Shown here in pieces: positions 10,057 through 25,721 of a stretch of 64,000 bases of DNA. The stretch comes from Bigelowiella natans CCMP2755 (taxonomy: Eukaryota; Protista; Cercozoa). The notes beneath the pieces were generated by a model. That model ran no database searches, was not told the origin of the DNA, and saw nothing but the letters and a program-made list of their open reading frames with translations. The position numbers and the translations under genes are program-made. Every line of letters begins with the position of its first letter. The first letter of the stretch is position 1. The stretch spans positions 1 through 64,000 of the forward strand of contig ADNK01002140.1 in assembly GCA_000320545.1 (NCBI GenBank), given 5' to 3'.

Positions 10057-10348
10057 CGACTCGCTTCATGACACTTCCTAGACTTCAATCTAACAACTTA
10101 AAGGAAACGTATCGACACAGAGACAATGCTGTACACCTTTCTGTTGACCAAAAATAACAAGACACACAAGTAATGCCGCCCTGGCTAGCTGGGCATGTTC
10201 TATGTCACCGCATCTTGCTGGCATGGTACGTTGTTAATAACAATTATATATATTATATACATATCATATTAATTGTCTATCATAAAGTGCACGTCATGTG
10301 CATTCATCATGCACATCACATCACCGCTACAATTGCACAGTCTATAAG

Positions 10349-11461: not shown

Positions 11462-12672
11462 ATGGATACATCTACACAAGTCACCGACCTGCATGTGCGG
11501 GACTGGATTCTAGATGTGCTGGGGATCGAGGATGAAAAGATGCGAAGTGCACCTTTAATGGAAATTCTGAAAGAGGGCGCTCTCTTGATCGATCTTGTCA
11601 ACATCTTCATCCGATCCGAGGATAACTATAAGAAACCCAAACGATCAGTGTCAGAGCTTTCGATTGTTCGAAGCTACGAGAACACAAACAAGTTCTTGAA
11701 CATCTGCCAGATCTATTTCCAGCTTCCAATGGTGGTGTTGTTTAGTTACAATGACTTCAAGAATAATAACATTGCTGCGGTTACTAAGTCCCTACTTAGC
11801 CTTCACAGTACAGTGATTAAAAGGGATGGGCTGGTTCATCCCCACATAAAGTGCCTTACCGACACAGGGCTAAGCAGCATGAGAAGTCCCCCTAAACTCG
11901 TCATAGCTACAACACATGTTCCGAAGCTGACTGATCCAGTTGTCCAACGTTTGAATTTGGAGAATGACGATGCAGAGATCGATCTTCAGGAAGATGAAGG
12001 TGATTATTCATCTTGCATTTGCAATGTTATCTTAGGTGATGAGGTGGCTCTTTCGAATGTTGACATAATTACAATCATTGTTATAATCTCTAGGGAACGA
12101 GCTTGACGAAATGAGAATGAAGTGTAAAGATTTGGAATCCAAATGCAAGCAACTCTCTAAACTAACCGAAGACCATAAAAAGCTCGAGGATAAGTATTCA
12201 CAACTCAAACAAGATGTCGAGAACAGCAAGACAGCGGAAGAAGAGCGGGAAGAATACAAACTGAAACTGATTGCTCTCGAACAAAAGTCTAAATTGATCA
12301 CCTCCGAGATGCAGCACTGGCAGGATGACTGCACCGAGTGGCAATCAAAGTACTCCACCATACATGGAAAGCTCACAGAGGCGGAGCAACGGCATAAGGA
12401 TCAGTTAGAGAGTATAAAGTCAAGACAAAGGGATACCGCTGACTTCGTTCTTGCCCCTTTGAGGGGGTTGAAACAGGAGTATGGTGGGTTCAGACAACAG
12501 ATCCAAGAGGAGTTATCTAAAATGAAGCAACATGCAATGAGCACTTCGGCTCAAATTCTCCACCGCATTAAAGACTCTGAAACTGAACATAACGAGAGGT
12601 TATACAACCCAAGCACAACAACTATAAGTTACAGTTCCTCGTCTACATTTCCCCACGATCTCGTTCTTTCAT

Positions 12673-12720
<48 letters not shown>

Positions 12721-15088
12721 CCCTGTTTTGAATATATTTAACCAATATCAATCCCGTCACCATAGGTATACTGAAGTTGAGAGGAAGTACCTCGACCTCC
12801 AACTTCACTGTGCGAAATTGCAGGCAGAGCAAAAGAAGCTCCTCAACCAGGTAATTGAAGCCAAGGGCAACATCCGAGTGTTTTGTCGAGTCCGTCCCCT
12901 GAAGAAGAAGGAGAGTTCTGACGGATCCAGCATGAAGCTGCTAAACGATCAGGAACTGGTGATTAAGAACAATCTTTTTAAGTTCGACTCTGTATTTGGA
13001 GCAAAATCTACGCAGGAGGACATCTTCACAGAGACCAAGCCGTTTGTTCAGGCGTGTGTAGAGGGCTACAACGTTTGCATGTTCGCCTATGGCCAGACAG
13101 GTGCAGGGAAGACGTACACGATGGAAGGTACCCCTGAGAATCGCGGTATGAACTATCGTTGCACTGAAAAGCTCTTCGACATGATGGAAGAGCGCAAGAA
13201 CGTGTTCTCCTTCAAAGTGAGTGTCAGTATTGTCGAAATCTACATCGACAAGGTGCTAGACCTTCTTCTCTCGCCCGAGAAGTACAACACGCAGCAGAAG
13301 CTCAAGATCAAGCAGAATGCCGAATATGGAATGTACATCCCAGGGCTTACAGAGGTGGATGTGACGAGCTCCGAGGAGATCATGGAGCTCTTGCAGAAGC
13401 GCGCAGCCGTAAATCGACGCACAAACGCAACGAAGATGAACCAAGCAAGCTCTCGTTCCCACTGTGTGATGATGGTGGCGGTGGTAGCAACTAGGCTGAG
13501 CGATAACGTAAGAACAAGGGGCAAGATGATCATGGTAGATCTCGCCGGTTCTGAGCGAGTGAATCGCTCAGAAGTGACTGGAGAGCAGTTTAAGGAGGCC
13601 ACCGCCATCAATAAGTCGCTCAGTGCACTGGGAAATGTAATTTCATCTCTGCAACATAAGAACTCCCATATCCCGTATCGAGACTCGAAGCTCACGTATC
13701 TCCTCCAAGACACTCTAGGTGGACAGTCCAAATGCTTGATGTTCTGCCAAATTTCACCCGCAATGGCTGATGCCGGGGAGTCTCTCTGCACCCTAAAATT
13801 CGCCTCACGTGTGGCGTCTGTGGAACTCGGAGAGGCCAAGAAGAATGTGAAGGCTGCTGCTGTTAACAGCAAGGAGTTAGACAGGCTGAGACAAGCGAAT
13901 CGACAGATATCAATGGAGCTGGACACGTTCAAGCGGCAAAAGCAAAAAGCCAATAACTCGGTGCAGAAACTCGAGCAGGAGAAGCAGAGCTTGGAAATGA
14001 AAATAGATCGGCAGCAGTCTTCACTTAAGGCTAAAGACCGTGAGATGCAAGGGCTCAGGGAGAGCATGGCAAAGGCGGAGCAAAGGTATAGAATGCAGAC
14101 ACGAAGATCCCAAGATGCTAGAAAGAAGGAAGATGACAAGCACCAGCACCTCAAACAGATACGGGAGATAGAAATGAAGGCGGGTCGCGAGAAGAAAGAG
14201 CTGGCACGAAGTCTCGACGAGCACAAGCGTCAAATCATGGACCTCGAGAAGCAACTGGACGTAAAGAGCAAGAAGTGCGAATCACTCAAGTCACAAGTTC
14301 GCACCCTTCGTAAATCTAGCACCTCGCTGGGTTCATTATCTTATAAACGACGAGAGAGCACCTCGGAAATGCGTGCTCCCTCTTCGTCTTCGATCTCCCA
14401 CAAGTGTGGCGGAAGTGGAGGAGGACTAGGAGGAGGAGGAGGAGTCGCCACAATAGAGGAGAGCAACAGTCCTCCCCAAACACCTGCTCGCCCTGTCCTC
14501 CATCAAGTTCGGTCCATCAATGGAGGGGCGCAATCTTCAGCAGTACACAGCATCACGAAGCAGCGGCGTGAGTGGACGGGCTCTCTATTCGGAAAGGGCA
14601 CTCCTGCCGCATCTAGAATGAGAGCGAGGATGATCAAGAGATCCTCCTCTCCCTCACAAAAGATCAAAAATAGCAGTAAAAAACTACATGGTGCCAGCAG
14701 CAGCTCGACCTCTGAAATGACGATAGACGATGGCGTGTCAAAGGAGAACATCAGCGTCAGCAAAGAGAACGTGGGAGGCAATAATAATAATAATAAAAAT
14801 AATACAGGGGGAACTGCTGGGGATGTAGCCTCCTCTAAACCTTCTACCACCACCAATACCAATACTGCAAAGCCAACGAAGAAGCGCGTCCGTTTTAACG
14901 CATCAGTAGAATCGCGAACTATTTCTAGCAAGTCCTCATCAGCGTCAAGCAGGATGTCTGCCATTAGTCGCAGGATAAAGTCCAAGCGGGGTGCTACTAC
15001 CTCCTACCTGAGTCAAGGAGCCAAGAGAATGACTGTAAGAAAGTCCACTAAGAGGGGTGCGAATAAGGTTGGGTGGAACAAGTTCTAA
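11462..15088 (+). CDS. Kinesin-14 with N-terminal calponin-homology domain (KCH-like)
   Basis: CH-like N-terminus (DWILDVLG...LKEGALLIDLVN...ENTNKFL), coiled coil, kinesin-14 neck KGNIRVFCRVRP, P-loop GQTGAGKT, SSRSH, DLAGSE and HIPYRDSKLT, then a second coiled coil and basic tail. Introns at ~12000-12094 and ~12599-12765. Confidence 0.93.
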
Positions 15089-15702
15089 ACTGCAATCAGC
15101 AACAGTTGGAACTGTTCAGCTGCCTTCATCGCAACTAATACTAATGAACGCCTGACTTCTAAGGCTTCCCCGATATCTACCTTCTTTTCACTTCTTCCTC
15201 CATTCTTACCCTGTCTCCCAAGAGTTACATTTTTTGAGCTGATGACTGTTTTAAGTTTCCTCCTAATCGTTGCTAAAAGGCAGTACGGTGCAAGTTGGTA
15301 AACTCTTGCGCATGAAATCACGAATTGTTGCACACGCTGGTGTTTTTTAATGTAATTTAATTTTACGTCACTGTTCGATCGTAAATCAAGCTTGCTTGTT
15401 CTAGTGATATGTGCGTACAGCATGCATTTTAGCGACTGCCTGTCCTAGTGTCGCCTAACTAGCTAATCACATGTTACGAGCATGCTAGCATGCATGCAAC
15501 TGGCCATGAAGTCATTGTGCCCATCATGAAACTTGCATGCGCGTACAGCTTGCACTAGCTAGCTAGTGCACAACATGGCACGCTAGCTAGCTAGCACACA
15601 CTAGACACACGCGGTCTGCTAGCTAGCTGGTGTGGCGAGACCTAGCTAGCTAGCTAGCTAGAGACCTACGATCATGATAGACATGCAATACATTGTATAT
15701 AT

Positions 15703-15736
<34 letters not shown>

Positions 15737-15739
<3 letters not shown>

Positions 15740-16290
15740 ATTGCTAGATTGGATTCCTCCCAACATCACAGATCACTGGCATCAAACTGAAACTTCCAAG
15801 CATTGCTACATCATGGATGCGCGCCATCTGTGCTAGTGTGGAGTGGGCAATCTTGGAAAATTCATGTTGTCACGTGGACAATGTAATGAGACTGATGCCA
15901 CATGCATCGCATGTGGCGTCCTGAAGGACATGCTAGCATGGATCATCTCCTGCAATGTCCAACACATGCAGCATGGTCAACAACAAATCAGATTGAGCAA
16001 TCAAATGAGCGCAATCATGAATCGCAACGACGAGACGAACTGCTAGACTGGCTGACAAAGGCTGAAAAAGATTCAAGAACTGTTGCGCGCAATGCGTGTC
16101 ATCATCGGTCGAAAGAGGATGCTTTCACATGCATGAAACAACTTTGTGGCAGAAACCAACAGGCACAACATCAGCGCTGTAGCCGCTGCATTGCTAGATT
16201 GCACAGCTACATCAGGATGACCATTGAAAAAATTTAATTTGTTCATTACATCCGTCTCATATACATTACATTGCACATTATATACATTAT
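15737..16290 (+). mobile_element. Decayed, 5'-truncated non-LTR retrotransposon (LINE ORF2 C-terminal CCHC knuckle, 3' UTR hairpin and short tail)
   Basis: After deleting three 8-bp CTAG+duplication inserts the frame reads HIGFLPTSQITGIKLKLPSIATSWMRAICGVGNLGKFMLSRGQCNETDATCIACGVLKDMDHLLQCPTHAAW (C-x2-C-x7-H-x3-C). It is followed by ...WLTK, the conserved hairpin at 16205-16260 and a tacat-rich tail. Confidence 0.7.
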
Positions 16291-17491
16291 ATATATGTTG
16301 TATTGCTGTCTGTGACATGTCTAGCTGTGTCTACTATCATGATCCTACGATCTAGCGATGCACCTAAATGACATACTAGCACAGCTAGCTAGAAGATAGA
16401 TTTGTGCAAACGAAGCTAGAAAGCTAGAAAGCAAGAACATTCTAGCATTGTTGTCTAGCTAGCTAGTATGCTAGCATGCCAGCTAGCCAGACACTAGGAC
16501 ATATAGACAGCTAGATTGGCACTACTAGCGACTACGCTAGCTAGCTCTAGAGCTAGCTAGTGCATCGATCGACACAATGCATGCAATCTGGTCGCGCGCA
16601 TGCCATCTGCTAGCTAGCTAGCTCCGACACAGCTAGCTAGCCAGACAGCTGCATTGCGCACACCTAGCTAGCTAGCTAGACACGCTAGCACGTCTGGACG
16701 TGGCCACACATTCACACCATCGCACGCACCGCTCTAGCACTTCTAGACTTGCCCGCTAGGACTAGCTAGCCTGCTAGCCTGGCTAGCTAGCTAGCTAGTG
16801 CTAGAAGACTGCGCAACACATCTGGACATGCTAGCATGATGGGGGCTTGCTAGCTAGCTAGAGCTGTTCTAGCTGTTGCCTGAAATGCCTAGTTAAAAAT
16901 GCACGCGCACACAGCGCTTTTTCTAGTTGAGAGAGCGCGCACGTCGCTTGATCTCTAGACCTAGTGTTGCAAAGAATGCGCAAACATTGGTCATGGCACT
17001 AATTGAGACTGGATGCGATTACACTAGAACACTCTAGCACTGTGCTGTGTGTCAATTTAGCTAGAGATACATCACCACGCGCGCGCGTCTAGGCGTGCGA
17101 ACACAAGCACACCACATACTATAATAGCAAACATCTCCACATTTGAGACATGCATGCGCGTGCAGCCTCCCGACTAGCCAAGGACAAACATAATTAATGA
17201 TGATCACGATGATGATGAATCATATTTCGATATCAAAGTATTAAAGTCCATGCTACCGATGAACTAATAGATATTGCTCATCCTTGATGAAGATGCTGAA
17301 ATATCTAAATCGACGATACATTGTTGGCTGGAGCGATAGATTCGCATAAAACAGCTTAGCAAAGAGCACCAAATAATGGTGGGCAACTTTTGAAATTGCG
17401 CTCCTATAACTGAATGGTTGGAACACACTTGCCACTGAGTAAGATGAGGCCATTATGAGATAGAGGAGAGGAGAGGCAACGTCTCATTTTG

Positions 17492-18108
17492 TTAATGAGC
17501 AGCCTCACTTTTTCTTTGCGATTTTGGGTTTAAAGAGGGAGCAGATGAGCCTGGCATCATTTGGCTTGGGCTGGGCATACTCCCCCCCATTGGAAATCCA
17601 CCTTGAGGAGCGGCACCACCCATTGAATAGCCAGGAAAGCCACCACTAAGAGGGCCCATTTGGAAGCCAGAGCCACCACCACCGCTAGGAGGGGGGGGAG
17701 GTCCCATTTGGAAACCACCAGGAATGCCGGGAATGCCCATCGTTTGAAACCCAGGAGGAGGAGGGGAAGGAGGAGCGGGAGGGCCAGAAGAACTGCTTGA
17801 AGGAGAACCCATTTGGAAGCCGGAAGGAGCTGCCCCCCCTGATGGAATTGGAGATGGAAATCCATTCGTTGGTAGCCCCATTTGACCTATGACATTAGTG
17901 ATGTTCGGCAGGTCTGATCCTACTCCTCCCCCTCCAGTGAAACCTGGTAGCAGCCCTGTGGTTGTTCCGCCAAACCCAGCAGCAGGGATCAGTCCGCCAA
18001 GTCCAAACGGTGGTGGTGGTGATGATGATGGTGATGATGGTGATGACGCCGACAGTGGATAAGAGAACGGGAAGCTCAGACCTCCTGAAGGGGGGGAGGG
18101 GTATTAGC

Positions 18109-18220: not shown

Positions 18221-21200
18221 TATACCGGGTTTAAAAAGAAACATCACACATAAATACACACGTGTCACCAACATGTTTATGAAATTGCCTTCAAACATCA
18301 TCTTCAAATGATGTATGGAGCAGCGGCAGCAGGAAGGCAGTCATGCTCATTACACCACGCAAGTCATCGTTCTCAACATAGTAACGATTATATAATGATA
18401 ATAATAATAATAATAATACAATGATAAGCATCATCGTCACAATCATACCTTGAGGTGCAGCTCCTTGTTGAGGGGGGGCATTTGCACCAGCAGCAGATGG
18501 AGAGTCGTCCTTAGAATGAGAACCAGAACTGTTTTCATGGCCCTCTTTCCCCTATTCATGGCAAAAGAAGTGGTGGTAGTTGTAGTAGTAGTAGTAGTAG
18601 TAGTTGTAGCAACCACGTCAGAGTTCAGACGATGTACTTTGTTTCACGTTTTTCCACAACAGTAAAGACATGGCGGTGACCTCCTAGTCACACTCCCCTA
18701 TCTATAACACATATCCTTCTAGTAGAATCATCTTCTTCCTCATCCCTAACGTCATGGTAGCAGGGGAGAAGAGCTAGTCACTCGCTCGAGAATTTACTAG
18801 CAAAGGTACAAACCTTAGCTTTTGCTGCCGATTCCTTCACCCGCTCTTGTTCTTTGGCCTTCTTTGACACCTTCCCATCTAATCCAATGTAGCTCAGGAA
18901 AGTCGAAAACAGCGATGTAGATGATGATGATGATGATGATGATTTCCGTGAAGCTGCAGCAGGTTGTCCACCAGGTTGCTGTCCTCCTCCAGGGATAAAT
19001 TGAGAGAAGTTAAACATCTGAGATTGGCCTCCTCCTGCTTCATTGGAGGGAGGGAGGGAGGGAGGGAGGGAGGGAGGGAAGGGGAGAGAGAGAGAACGAG
19101 AGGAAGGAAGTAAAAGAGAGAAAGAGAGTGAGTTTGGTGTTAGCTGCTGCAATCCGCACACAACAAACAAAGATGCATTACTAGATCTATATTATTATCT
19201 ATAGATAAATGAGATGGGAAATAATTGATAACGCCGGGCAGCGGACTGGTAAGCACGCATTTGCTAATGAGCTATTACGTATCAGAATATAGGCAGCAAT
19301 GCAACAGCATTGTGCTTAACTGGTTGATAAATAACGGATGTAGTAGCATTTGTGCTATATTGATGTTGTGTTCAATAGTGTTATTATCAAAGTAAATACA
19401 TACAATTATGGCCACCACTAATCTACTTTCAAGGCAATACAAAGAATAACAGTATCTGGGTTAAGTTCATCGCTCATCGTCTGTCAGTTGGCATCATCTG
19501 GTCATTTTTCAGCCCCCCTCGCTCCTTCTTCCTCCCTCTTCATACCTGGAAATCCTGCCCCTCCCCCAGAAGCTGAAGGAGCACCGTTTGTCGTCGGTGT
19601 AGGGGGGATGAACTGAGAGAAGTTAAACATGCCTCCAGGAATGTACTGGCTAAAATTAAACATCCCCCCTCCAGATTGAGGGGATGACGGAGGAGGCATT
19701 GATGTGGCAGGTGATGATGAGCCAGGAGCAGCACCATCTCCACCCATATACTGAGCATAAGCAGCAGGAATACCACTTCCAATGCTAGGTGATGATGACG
19801 ACGATGATGAGCCAGTAGCAGCACCAGCAGCACCCATGTACTGAGCATAAGCAGCAGGAATACCACTTCCAATGCTAGGTGATGATGATGACGATGATGA
19901 GCCAGGAGCAGCACCAGCAGCACCCATATACTGAGCATAAGCAGCAGGAATACCACTTCCAATGCTAGGTGATGATGATGACGATGATGAGCCAGGAGCA
20001 GCACCAGCAGCACCCATGTACTGAGCATAGGCAGCAGGAATACCACTTCCAATGCTAGGTGATGATGATGACGATGATGAGCCAGGAGCAGCACCAGCAG
20101 CACCCATGTACTGAGCATAGGCAGCAGGAATACCGTAGCCACTTCCAGAAGGAGAAGCAGCAGAAGGGTATCCTCCACTAGGGATTAAGCCAGTAGATGC
20201 TGATTGAGAAGGGGGAGAGGAGGAGGAGGAGCGTGTGTCGTGCTGCCCTTTACGTGCTTTCTCAATAGCGAAGGCCATTGCAATAGGTTGGGGTTTAGAA
20301 GAACTAGGAATATATTTGCTGTAGTCAAAGGTGCTGCTGTTGCTGCTACCGCTGTCAGCAGAAGGCTGGCCGCTACTTGCTGGGATGAATTTGGAGAAGT
20401 TGAAACCTCCACTTCCGCCTTGTCCTTGCATATACCTAAAGAAGAAGGGCATAAGAGAGAAGAAATGGTGGTGGATCATCATGGTCAAACAGCTCCATGT
20501 GTTGATGTAATCATCAGAGCTTCTCCTTTCTTCCACCAAAGGTTTTAATGTAGGAATGTTGTTTATGTGTGGGTGTATAATGCAGGTACATCGCGTGCAC
20601 GTACTTGGAGAAATTGAAGCTGGTGCTGTCACCTCCTCCAGCACCACCAGCACTTGGGGGAGGGGCTCCTGTTTGAGGACCAAAGTCAGCCCCAGGTGGG
20701 CCGTAGCCGCTACGCGACGTGTATACCGCGCATTTCAGACCCTTCGTTGGACCATCCACACACCCTTGGCATAGAGCACAAGTTCTCAAATTTGTCAGAG
20801 AAGTATCGTTCTTCGGGCCTTTCAGACAATCCATAGCCGTGATGCCGGCCGTCTCGTTGATACCGTAGGAGAGGCAAGAAAGAGGGCCTTGGTTTGTGCT
20901 GCCGGGACCCTGTCTCATCGATGCACCCATAGCTGAGGTCTCAGAAAAGCATTTCATTTGGATGCATACATCTGGACGGCTGACGAGAGCTGATGATTTT
21001 TCTTTCTTAGCCGCCGTCGTCCCTTTGTTGTCGGTGGTAGTAGTAGCGGGTGATTTCTTCGACGACGGATGAGAGGCTTTCTTCTCTCTAGCCGCAGCGA
21101 AGAATTCCATCGCACCCTTTGAGGGGCAATTGTAGGCCGCTGGATTGGCGCCAGAGATGCAGCCGTTGCACACAGCACACTTGCATACACTGCTGCCAGT

Positions 21201-24752: not shown

Positions 24753-25721
24753 CCTTCAAAGGAGCCGTAAAATGTACAGCAACTTGTCGATGAACCATTA
24801 TGTGACTAGCAGTTTGTGCTCACTGAACTGCGTTCATTTGCATGAATGGGGGCAACTTCAATTATTAATCATGGCAATGTATTGTTGCGATTTCTCCAAT
24901 AATTATGATCAATATTAATCATTTGTCCCAACAGTATCCAGCATGCAGCTATATTTAGACATGCTATGACACGTGAACAGTGCGTTGTGCACGTCCGGAG
25001 CAACTAAAAACAAATTTGCATGCGACACGTTGCAGTTTTCTATAGTTTGCGCGAACTTATCTGAGTCGCAATCTGCATCTCCACTGCGTTCGATGACATG
25101 TCCTTTCATGGCGCATTTGATTCCTTGGTGGGACGAGGGTACCTATACCACATGTGACATGTGACAGTGCTAGCAGTGCTAGAGTGCCTCAGAGCGTTGT
25201 GCGCTTGTCTAGTTGTCCCTACGCCAGCCTAGATTGAGCATCCCGTGAAGTAGTTGTGCACCACTAGACCATGAAAGTTTAGAGCCCAAGGCAAACGCAT
25301 AGAATAATAGACATGTAATACCATATATGATATATATGATATTACTGTGTCTAGACATGTGATATATAATATATATGATATTACTGTGTCTTTAATTAGA
25401 TTGTGTACTGATGGCTATTATACTATAGTACATGTATCATACTAGCGTAGCTCGTGTTGACTACATCTTGACATAGCAATGAGTGCGGCTCTATGCTCTA
25501 TGCAGTCGCCTCCTTTTCTGCGGCGTAGCGCCAAAAAATCAAAGCTGATTTTGGCATTGAATAATATGACTATTTATCGCACGAAAAAGTAGCCATGTGA
25601 ATGCATTCTTACGGTTGACATATCTAGTTGTGCGTGCGCTTGATAAATTGACCACAACATTGTTCATCGGCACCTGGCTTTATTAGGTGATTGCACGCTC
25701 AGCAGGTGATTCTATATGTCA

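Follow-up and report, generated by a model that had tools for sequence, protein, structure and literature searches.

A truncated LINE in Bigelowiella natans records a regional insertion process that leaves CTAG scars

Why should every CTAG in half a kilobase of spacer DNA stand between two copies of the same four bases? The question is raised by positions 15737-16260 of a 64,000-nucleotide window (the whole stretch analysed here; contig ADNK01002140.1, positions 1 to 64,000) from the cercozoan Bigelowiella natans CCMP2755, whose assembly (GCA_000320545.1) comprises 91.4 Mb in 3,736 contigs. All five CTAGs in this interval are bracketed by identical 4-mers, the first 4-mers (N4) starting at 15740, 15829, 15929, 16039 and 16190; the chance of identical flanking 4-mers is 1/256 for a single CTAG. 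The window as a whole contains 59 such N4-CTAG-N4 units, 42 of them outside CTAG arrays, with ~1 expected. An earlier note, written from the sequence alone, had described the five units, assigned the interval to the end of a long interspersed nuclear element (LINE), and proposed that the units were inserted after the LINE had integrated, possibly as a form of genome defence. Here we compare this LINE fragment with its relatives elsewhere in the genome and show that the units, which we call scars, depend on chromosomal region and time rather than on repeats. They are most likely the excision footprint of a cut-and-paste element, a reading to which we give an even chance.

A LINE fragment broken by CTAG insertions

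By homology, the interval is a 5'-truncated LINE carrying the C-terminus of the second open reading frame (ORF2), as the earlier note had recognized. At least 50 sequences elsewhere in the genome are related to the 524-bp stretch, and a first look gave more than 1,400 candidate fragments of the family. Three full-length copies are 99.7-99.9% identical over ~4.97 kb (L031:2537-7501, L032:2046-7011 and L033:65-5028), with ORF1 (up to 480 aa) and ORF2 (1164 aa) both open, and on these sequences the family looks recently active. The intact ORF2 of L032 (L032:3492-6983, 1164 aa) matches the Pfam models Exo_endo_phos_2 (9.6e-18) and RVT_1 (7.2e-18); comparison of ORF2 with solved structures gave no sequence-level match. 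LINEs are non-long-terminal-repeat elements that encode a reverse transcriptase along with an endonuclease of the apurinic type. The family resembles them in its two ORFs, in the Exo_endo_phos_2 and RVT_1 domains of ORF2, in frequent 5' truncation at differing points, in a 3' end shared by all copies, and in variable target-site duplications of 8-13 bp (seen in L004, L007, L008, L011 and L021). It is unlike them in that this end, ...CCGTCTCA, lacks a poly-A tail. Judged from the 3' flanks of 30 copies (L001-L030), landing tends to be in TA/CA/TG-rich, microsatellite-like DNA (e.g. TATACAT, CATGTAC and TGTGCATG), and short tandem arrays of the LINE 3' end are present at several loci (contigs C3043, C2743 and C3123).

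The copy in the window, L001, is a stump at 15748-16259 that represents the last 0.5 kb of the element: residues 1016-1164 of ORF2, the stop codon, and a 22-bp tail. A tblastn search with the intact ORF2 placed the coding fragment, stop included, at 15748-16237 on the plus strand, where six scars, together with a 1-bp insertion, now divide it among three frames. The 3' untranslated end follows at 16238-16259 on the same strand, closing with ...CCGTCTCA and no poly-A; here the homology among 30 copies ceases, and the flanks differ beyond. On inspection by eye, ACATTG at 16268-16273 (plus strand) is the probable 3' copy of the stump's target-site duplication, with the 5' copy at 15738-15743. DNA identity of the stump to its nearest copies is 96%. 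The spacing C-x6-C-x2-C-x7-H-x3-C is visible in both the intact ORF2 and the window sequence, for which a CCHC knuckle had been suggested, but no Pfam zinc-finger model matched the motif, with a weak sub-threshold NZF hit alone. Pfam searches with the pieces between scars gave no matches, the pieces being too short.

To polarize the scars, to which no strand is assigned, L001 was aligned with 29 other genomic copies from several subfamilies. Scar 1 (ATTG-CTAG-ATTG, 15740-15751) sits exactly where the flank, or target duplication, meets the truncated LINE; only the last 3 bases of its 4-mer are LINE, and it is not polarizable from other copies. Scar 2 (TGTG-CTAG-TGTG, 15829-15840), scar 3 (CATG-CTAG-CATG, 15929-15940) and scar 4 (ACTG-CTAG-ACTG, 16039-16050) each contain 8 inserted bases (15829-15836, 15929-15936 and 16039-16046, respectively) that are missing from 29 of the 29 other copies. 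Scar 3 interrupts the Cys/His motif. Scar 5 (ATTG-CTAG-ATTG, 16190-16201; 8 bp inserted at 16190-16197) is missing from 28 of 29, the copy that shares it being L005. Between scars 3 and 4 lies a variant, CATG-CAG-CATG (15965-15975), in which the T of CTAG is gone and 7 bp are inserted (15965-15971); it is private to the stump and coincides with a frame switch. N4-CAG-N4 units are mildly enriched in their own right (14 versus 6.9 expected). A private A inserted at 16140 (plus strand), found both in the alignment and by tblastn, is an ordinary small indel.

In the other copies, the unduplicated 4-mer without CTAG stands at four of the stump's sites, and likewise at the sites of scars in L004 and L015; this is the empty ancestral state. 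At the level of sequence comparison, the 8-mers at the four testable sites are therefore proven to be insertions that followed LINE integration, and the direction of change proposed earlier is confirmed by the alignment of copies that the earlier note had called for, with scar 5 of L005 as the exception among the four 8-mers.

The reading frame tells the same story. When the intact ORF2 is searched against the window with tblastn, each change of frame coincides with a private insertion, and the frame switches at scars bear out the claim that every scar is a frameshift. Removal of all seven insertions in silico yields a single frame of 149 codons up to the family stop, whose gap-free alignment to ORF2 shows 126 identities in 150 positions (84%). 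In the raw sequence, no frame aligns to ORF2 beyond 124 positions, and that one does so at about half identity. As had been reported, a single frame free of stops results when 8 bp are deleted at each of units 1-3; these removals alone leave it open, since the 7+8 and the 1+8 inserted bases each bring the phase back. The peptide read from it is in frame as far as ...CPTH, but the AAW that followed lies beyond the sixth scar, which had gone unnoticed. Similarly, the further 1-bp shift that had been invoked is real but corresponds to the 7-bp scar at 15965-15975, and the 1-bp insertion at 16140 had been missed. With all scars counted, their spacing is irregular (89, 100, 36, 74 and 151 bp), and no regularity is seen that would suggest chromatin phasing, a possibility that the earlier note had left undecided for its 90-150 bp spacing.

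Scarring follows region and time rather than repeats

The stump lies in a scar field of 1.65 kb (15441-17096, unstranded) in the spacer between two converging genes, with 24 N4-CTAG-N4 units outside arrays in addition to (CTAG)n arrays. The DNA on either side of the stump (15089-15740 and 16261-17490) is single-copy in the genome. Its density of ~10 scars/kb equals that of the stump itself, which has five perfect scars, one variant and seven private substitutions. The closest sisters, L006 and L007 (96% identity), have six and five private substitutions, flanks with 0-0.7 scars/kb, and no scars at all; judged from the private substitutions, they are about as old as the stump. Two older copies outside scar fields, L003 and L014, are also free of scars. 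The remaining copies contain three scars in 37 kb, and the copies concerned, L004, L005 and L015, sit at loci whose flank densities (1.3-2.2 scars/kb) rank among the next highest.

Residence time matters as well. L008, a young stump with a terminal branch of 0.002, lies in a field of 12.5 scars/kb and has no scars in 668 bp, where ~8 would be expected at field density had it been resident throughout. The three near-identical full-length copies (~15 kb in total) have no scars inside the element. At L021, an existing CTAG array was duplicated within the target-site duplication of the LINE itself. Young LINEs such as L021 and L008 landed in CTAG arrays that were already present. Because the stump and its single-copy flanks are equally dense in scars and sisters of equal age elsewhere are scar-free, these comparisons show that scars depend on region and time and not on repeats, with unique and repeated DNA affected alike.

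These observations bear directly on the proposal of the earlier note that the scars represent a repeat-directed genome defence, an indel-based analogue of fungal repeat-induced point mutation (RIP) that frameshifts transposons. Several features are in accord with it: every scar shifts the frame, the stump has been broken six times, and dead copies of Harbinger elements bear scars too. Moreover, foreign DNA in this genome is subject to a distinct hypermutation directed at TpA (preprint 10.64898/2026.01.13.699255). Like the scarring, RIP and the TpA process are mutational, inactivate mobile DNA, and take place in DNA that is silent or foreign. They differ in that both make substitutions in repeated or foreign DNA, whereas the scars are insertions, unique DNA is equally affected, and repeats outside the fields are spared. 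Neither the spacer (TA observed/expected 1.02, that is, not TpA-purged) nor the seven private substitutions of the stump show a TpA pattern. A defence aimed at repeats is contradicted by scar-free sisters of the same age, by three scars in 37 kb of other copies and none in the near-identical full-length ones, by a scar-free young stump inside a dense field, and by single-copy flanks hit as often as the stump. We therefore regard a RIP analogue as highly improbable, and we infer that the frameshifts of the stump are collateral damage rather than a defence aimed at the LINE.

The scar event and its possible sources

Across 162 kb of the genome, CTAG is the only one of the 256 possible centres that is enriched between 4-base direct repeats (41-fold), and it remains the sole enriched centre after removal of multi-copy LINE DNA (87 observed versus 2.1 expected). 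By length of the duplication, 87 scars have 4 bp (2.2 expected), 11 have 5 bp (0.5 expected), and six have 3 bp (8.6 expected), with ~88% of scars in the 4-bp class and ~11% in the 5-bp class. Scars with 5-bp duplications, e.g. ACTTC-CTAG-ACTTC, are found in the window at 10073-10086, 15596-15609, 16864-16877 and 25165-25178, and also at the loci L005, L008 and L015. The target preference is symmetric: in a strand-symmetrized tally of 88 sites, 88% have C or A as the first base and G or T as the fourth, CATG being the commonest target. Other small palindromic insertions were also seen in LINE copies, namely TGCA in L004 (~1590, the same site as window 15829) and AGCT in L015.

The insert between 4-bp duplications is CTAG in 85 cases, and lengths from 5 to 60 bp are not enriched except for nested (CTAG)3. 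This distribution bears on the possibility that the scars are abortive retrotransposition events, extremely 5'-truncated, in which target-primed reverse transcription by the same or another LINE copied only 4 bases. LINE stumps and scars do occur in the same spacers. However, the LINE 3' end is ...GTCTCA and not CTAG, its duplications are variable (8-13 bp), and there is no continuum of insert lengths starting or ending with CTAG, the counts falling from 85 at 4 bp to background from 6 to 60 bp. The 3' end, the duplication lengths and the missing continuum contradict such an origin for the present LINE family, and we consider the explanation in general extremely improbable.

The duplication length also invites comparison with topoisomerase II-type breaks, in which a 4-base stagger is filled in and rejoined. 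Torsional stress accumulates at convergent gene ends, and trapped topoisomerase II, in yeast top2 mutants and in the human indel signature ID17, gives rise to de novo duplications of 2-4 bp without added bases. The scars are alike in the exact 4-bp duplication found in most of them, as expected from a break with a 4-base stagger. They are unlike in that topoisomerase events are plain tandem duplications of 2-4 bp, whereas in every scar counted the two copies are separated by CTAG, and in that 11% of scars have a 5-bp duplication. A topoisomerase II origin thus appears very unlikely.

Scars may recur at one place, and they age. The ATTG-CTAG-ATTG of scar 5 (16190-16201) is also present at the same LINE position in L005:1915-1926 (contig C729), although L001 and L005 fall in different subfamilies of the tree and their nearest relatives lack this scar. 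Under uniform site choice, the probability of a shared site is ~5/470; the shared scar reflects either an insertion hot spot with independent hits or a short gene conversion. The scars are of mixed age, as decayed forms are in excess: pairs with one mismatch number 61 versus 26 expected, and CTGG or CCAG centres 17 versus 2.5. At targets outside arrays, (CTAG)3 outnumbers (CTAG)2 fourfold (eight versus two), and within a CTAG array at 16540-16556 of the window we observed AGCT-CTAG-AGCT. Both fit a growth of arrays by re-insertion into earlier scars. Slippage also contributes to arrays, since (CTAG)2 runs are common overall (24).

Such forms are difficult to reconcile with an artefact introduced by sequencing or assembly. 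No independent assembly turned up when two ORFs from the locus were looked up by exact protein match, and this leaves some room for an artefact. Nevertheless, the scars lie within contiguous sequence and copy the local 4 bases, decayed and nested forms exist, the scars are confined to particular spacers, and at L021 they were copied within the target-site duplication of a later LINE insertion. We find an artefact hardly credible.

These data show a sequence of events. The LINE was 5'-truncated on insertion into the untranscribed DNA that separates a kinesin gene from the gene converging on it. Later, its 0.47-kb stump gained six copies of a stereotyped insertion, CTAG plus 4 duplicated target bases (one of them without the T), and the 1-bp insertion. 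On the excision-footprint reading that we propose, each scar would stem from a staggered cut such as a transposase or integrase makes; such a maker is suggested by the fixed stagger with a minor +1 class, the symmetric target preference, and the possible hot spot. The element itself would begin and end with CTAG, and after its excision the donor flanks would keep 4-base CTAG overhangs. Being self-complementary, these overhangs could pair and ligate cleanly, which would explain the uniformity of the scars.

The scars have the general form of excision footprints: both copies of a fixed-length duplication are kept around a constant residue, and the ancestral empty site has neither residue nor duplication. 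They are reminiscent of the footprints of Tc1/mariner elements and Minos, which likewise keep both copies of the target duplication around a constant few bases, with a symmetric target preference and rare variants one base shorter or longer. In contrast to those footprints, the duplication here is 4 bp (sometimes 5) of almost any sequence and not TA, the residue is the palindrome CTAG, ~10 scars/kb are piled up in small fields, and no matching element was found in 234 kb. This density is far above that of any footprint record known to us.

Several further results weigh against the excision-footprint reading. A search of the window and 47 loci (234 kb) for elements spanning 40-8000 bp, with CTAG...CTAG or CT...AG ends, inverted repeats of 16-20 bp and a 4-bp duplication, returned only the noise of CTAG arrays. 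No 8-mer recurs next to CTAG except in a coding tandem repeat, and the scar field around the stump holds no other repeat. Genome searches revealed no Tc1-type DDE_3 transposase and no piggyBac transposase, the latter being a weak negative since the control was silent too. Dimerization domains of the hAT type occur at three loci, L034 (C2149:11338-11538), L035 (C2351:208686-208913) and L036 (C2036:88857-89018), in open frames of 304-662 aa, and a dense scar field, six units in ~550 bp, adjoins L036; hAT elements make 8-bp target duplications and are unsuitable as the source. Harbinger elements gave 15 genome matches, of which 12 loci were fetched (L037-L048; contigs C777, C1193, C2929, C1777, C1458 and others). 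Seven of the 12 contain CTAG scars. The Harbinger copies are TpA-depleted, with TA observed/expected of 0.01-0.24 in 11 of the 12 (0.75 in L046), and look like dead relics rather than a source; the depletion agrees with the TpA-directed hypermutation of foreign DNA described for B. natans (preprint 10.64898/2026.01.13.699255). Of the 21 de novo indels from a mutation-accumulation study (preprint, Table S2), not one includes a CTAG, a result that is not decisive given the <1 to ~4 expected by a rough estimate. Finally, to reach ~10 scars/kb, elements would have had to insert and excise a great many times within a single stretch of 1-2 kb.

These difficulties lend some weight to a second type of source, in which a host or domesticated enzyme of the transposase or integrase kind, or a special form of break repair, makes staggered 4-bp cuts in silent spacer chromatin that are sealed with CTAG filler. 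The lack of a source element in 234 kb, the extreme uniformity of the scar, its strict confinement to fields beyond gene ends, and the very high local density all point in this direction. However, no candidate enzyme was identified, the mixture of 4- and 5-bp duplications and the symmetric target preference suit a transposase equally well, and we know of no repair route that adds a constant palindromic tetranucleotide. Overall, we consider this explanation possible but somewhat doubtful. A stronger form of it, in which a host-controlled activity of the transposase or integrase kind adds a 4-base palindrome again and again to the silent DNA that separates converging genes, without any selfish element, we judge unlikely. 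If true, it would amount to a programmed or chromatin-directed insertional mutagenesis that builds CTAG-rich spacers, with the LINE stump as its dated recorder.

Setting of the locus and significance

The spacer is bounded on the left by a kinesin gene at 12671-15088 (plus strand), whose motor domain matches Pfam Kinesin with E = 6e-107. Its stop codon lies ~350 bp upstream of the scar field and ~650 bp before the LINE stump. On the right, the field ends ~400 bp short of an ORF on the opposite strand, a Pro/Gly-rich frame at 17492-17881 (minus strand) that comes from the ORF list and has no Pfam match; it is probably the last exon of the converging gene. Further on, at 19502-20683 (minus strand), a 393-aa ORF contains a 90-bp coding unit, rich in Ser, Gly and Ala, in four to five tandem copies. 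A Pfam search with this ORF gave no match; the ORF is probably part of the gene converging on the kinesin gene.

In the literature searched, whose coverage was incomplete, we found no account of such scars. The multi-copy LINE supplies the ancestral state for each testable scar and thereby defines the event as CTAG plus a 4-base target duplication, occasionally with a total of 7 or 9 bp. It also fixes the order of events, with the LINE landing first and the scars following. Sisters of the same age at separate loci make it possible to tell where the process acts from what it acts on: it marks a chromosomal region. In addition, the stump gives a rate, as scars within a field accumulate at about the same order as base substitutions (5-6 versus 7). 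The many LINE fragments of this genome could be used in the same manner, as insertion traps for the source of the scars. The fragment examined here is an ordinary LINE stump that records an extraordinary regional insertion process, and finding the source of that process, be it an enzyme of the host or a mobile element that ends in CTAG, would explain a major class of intergenic DNA in the B. natans genome.

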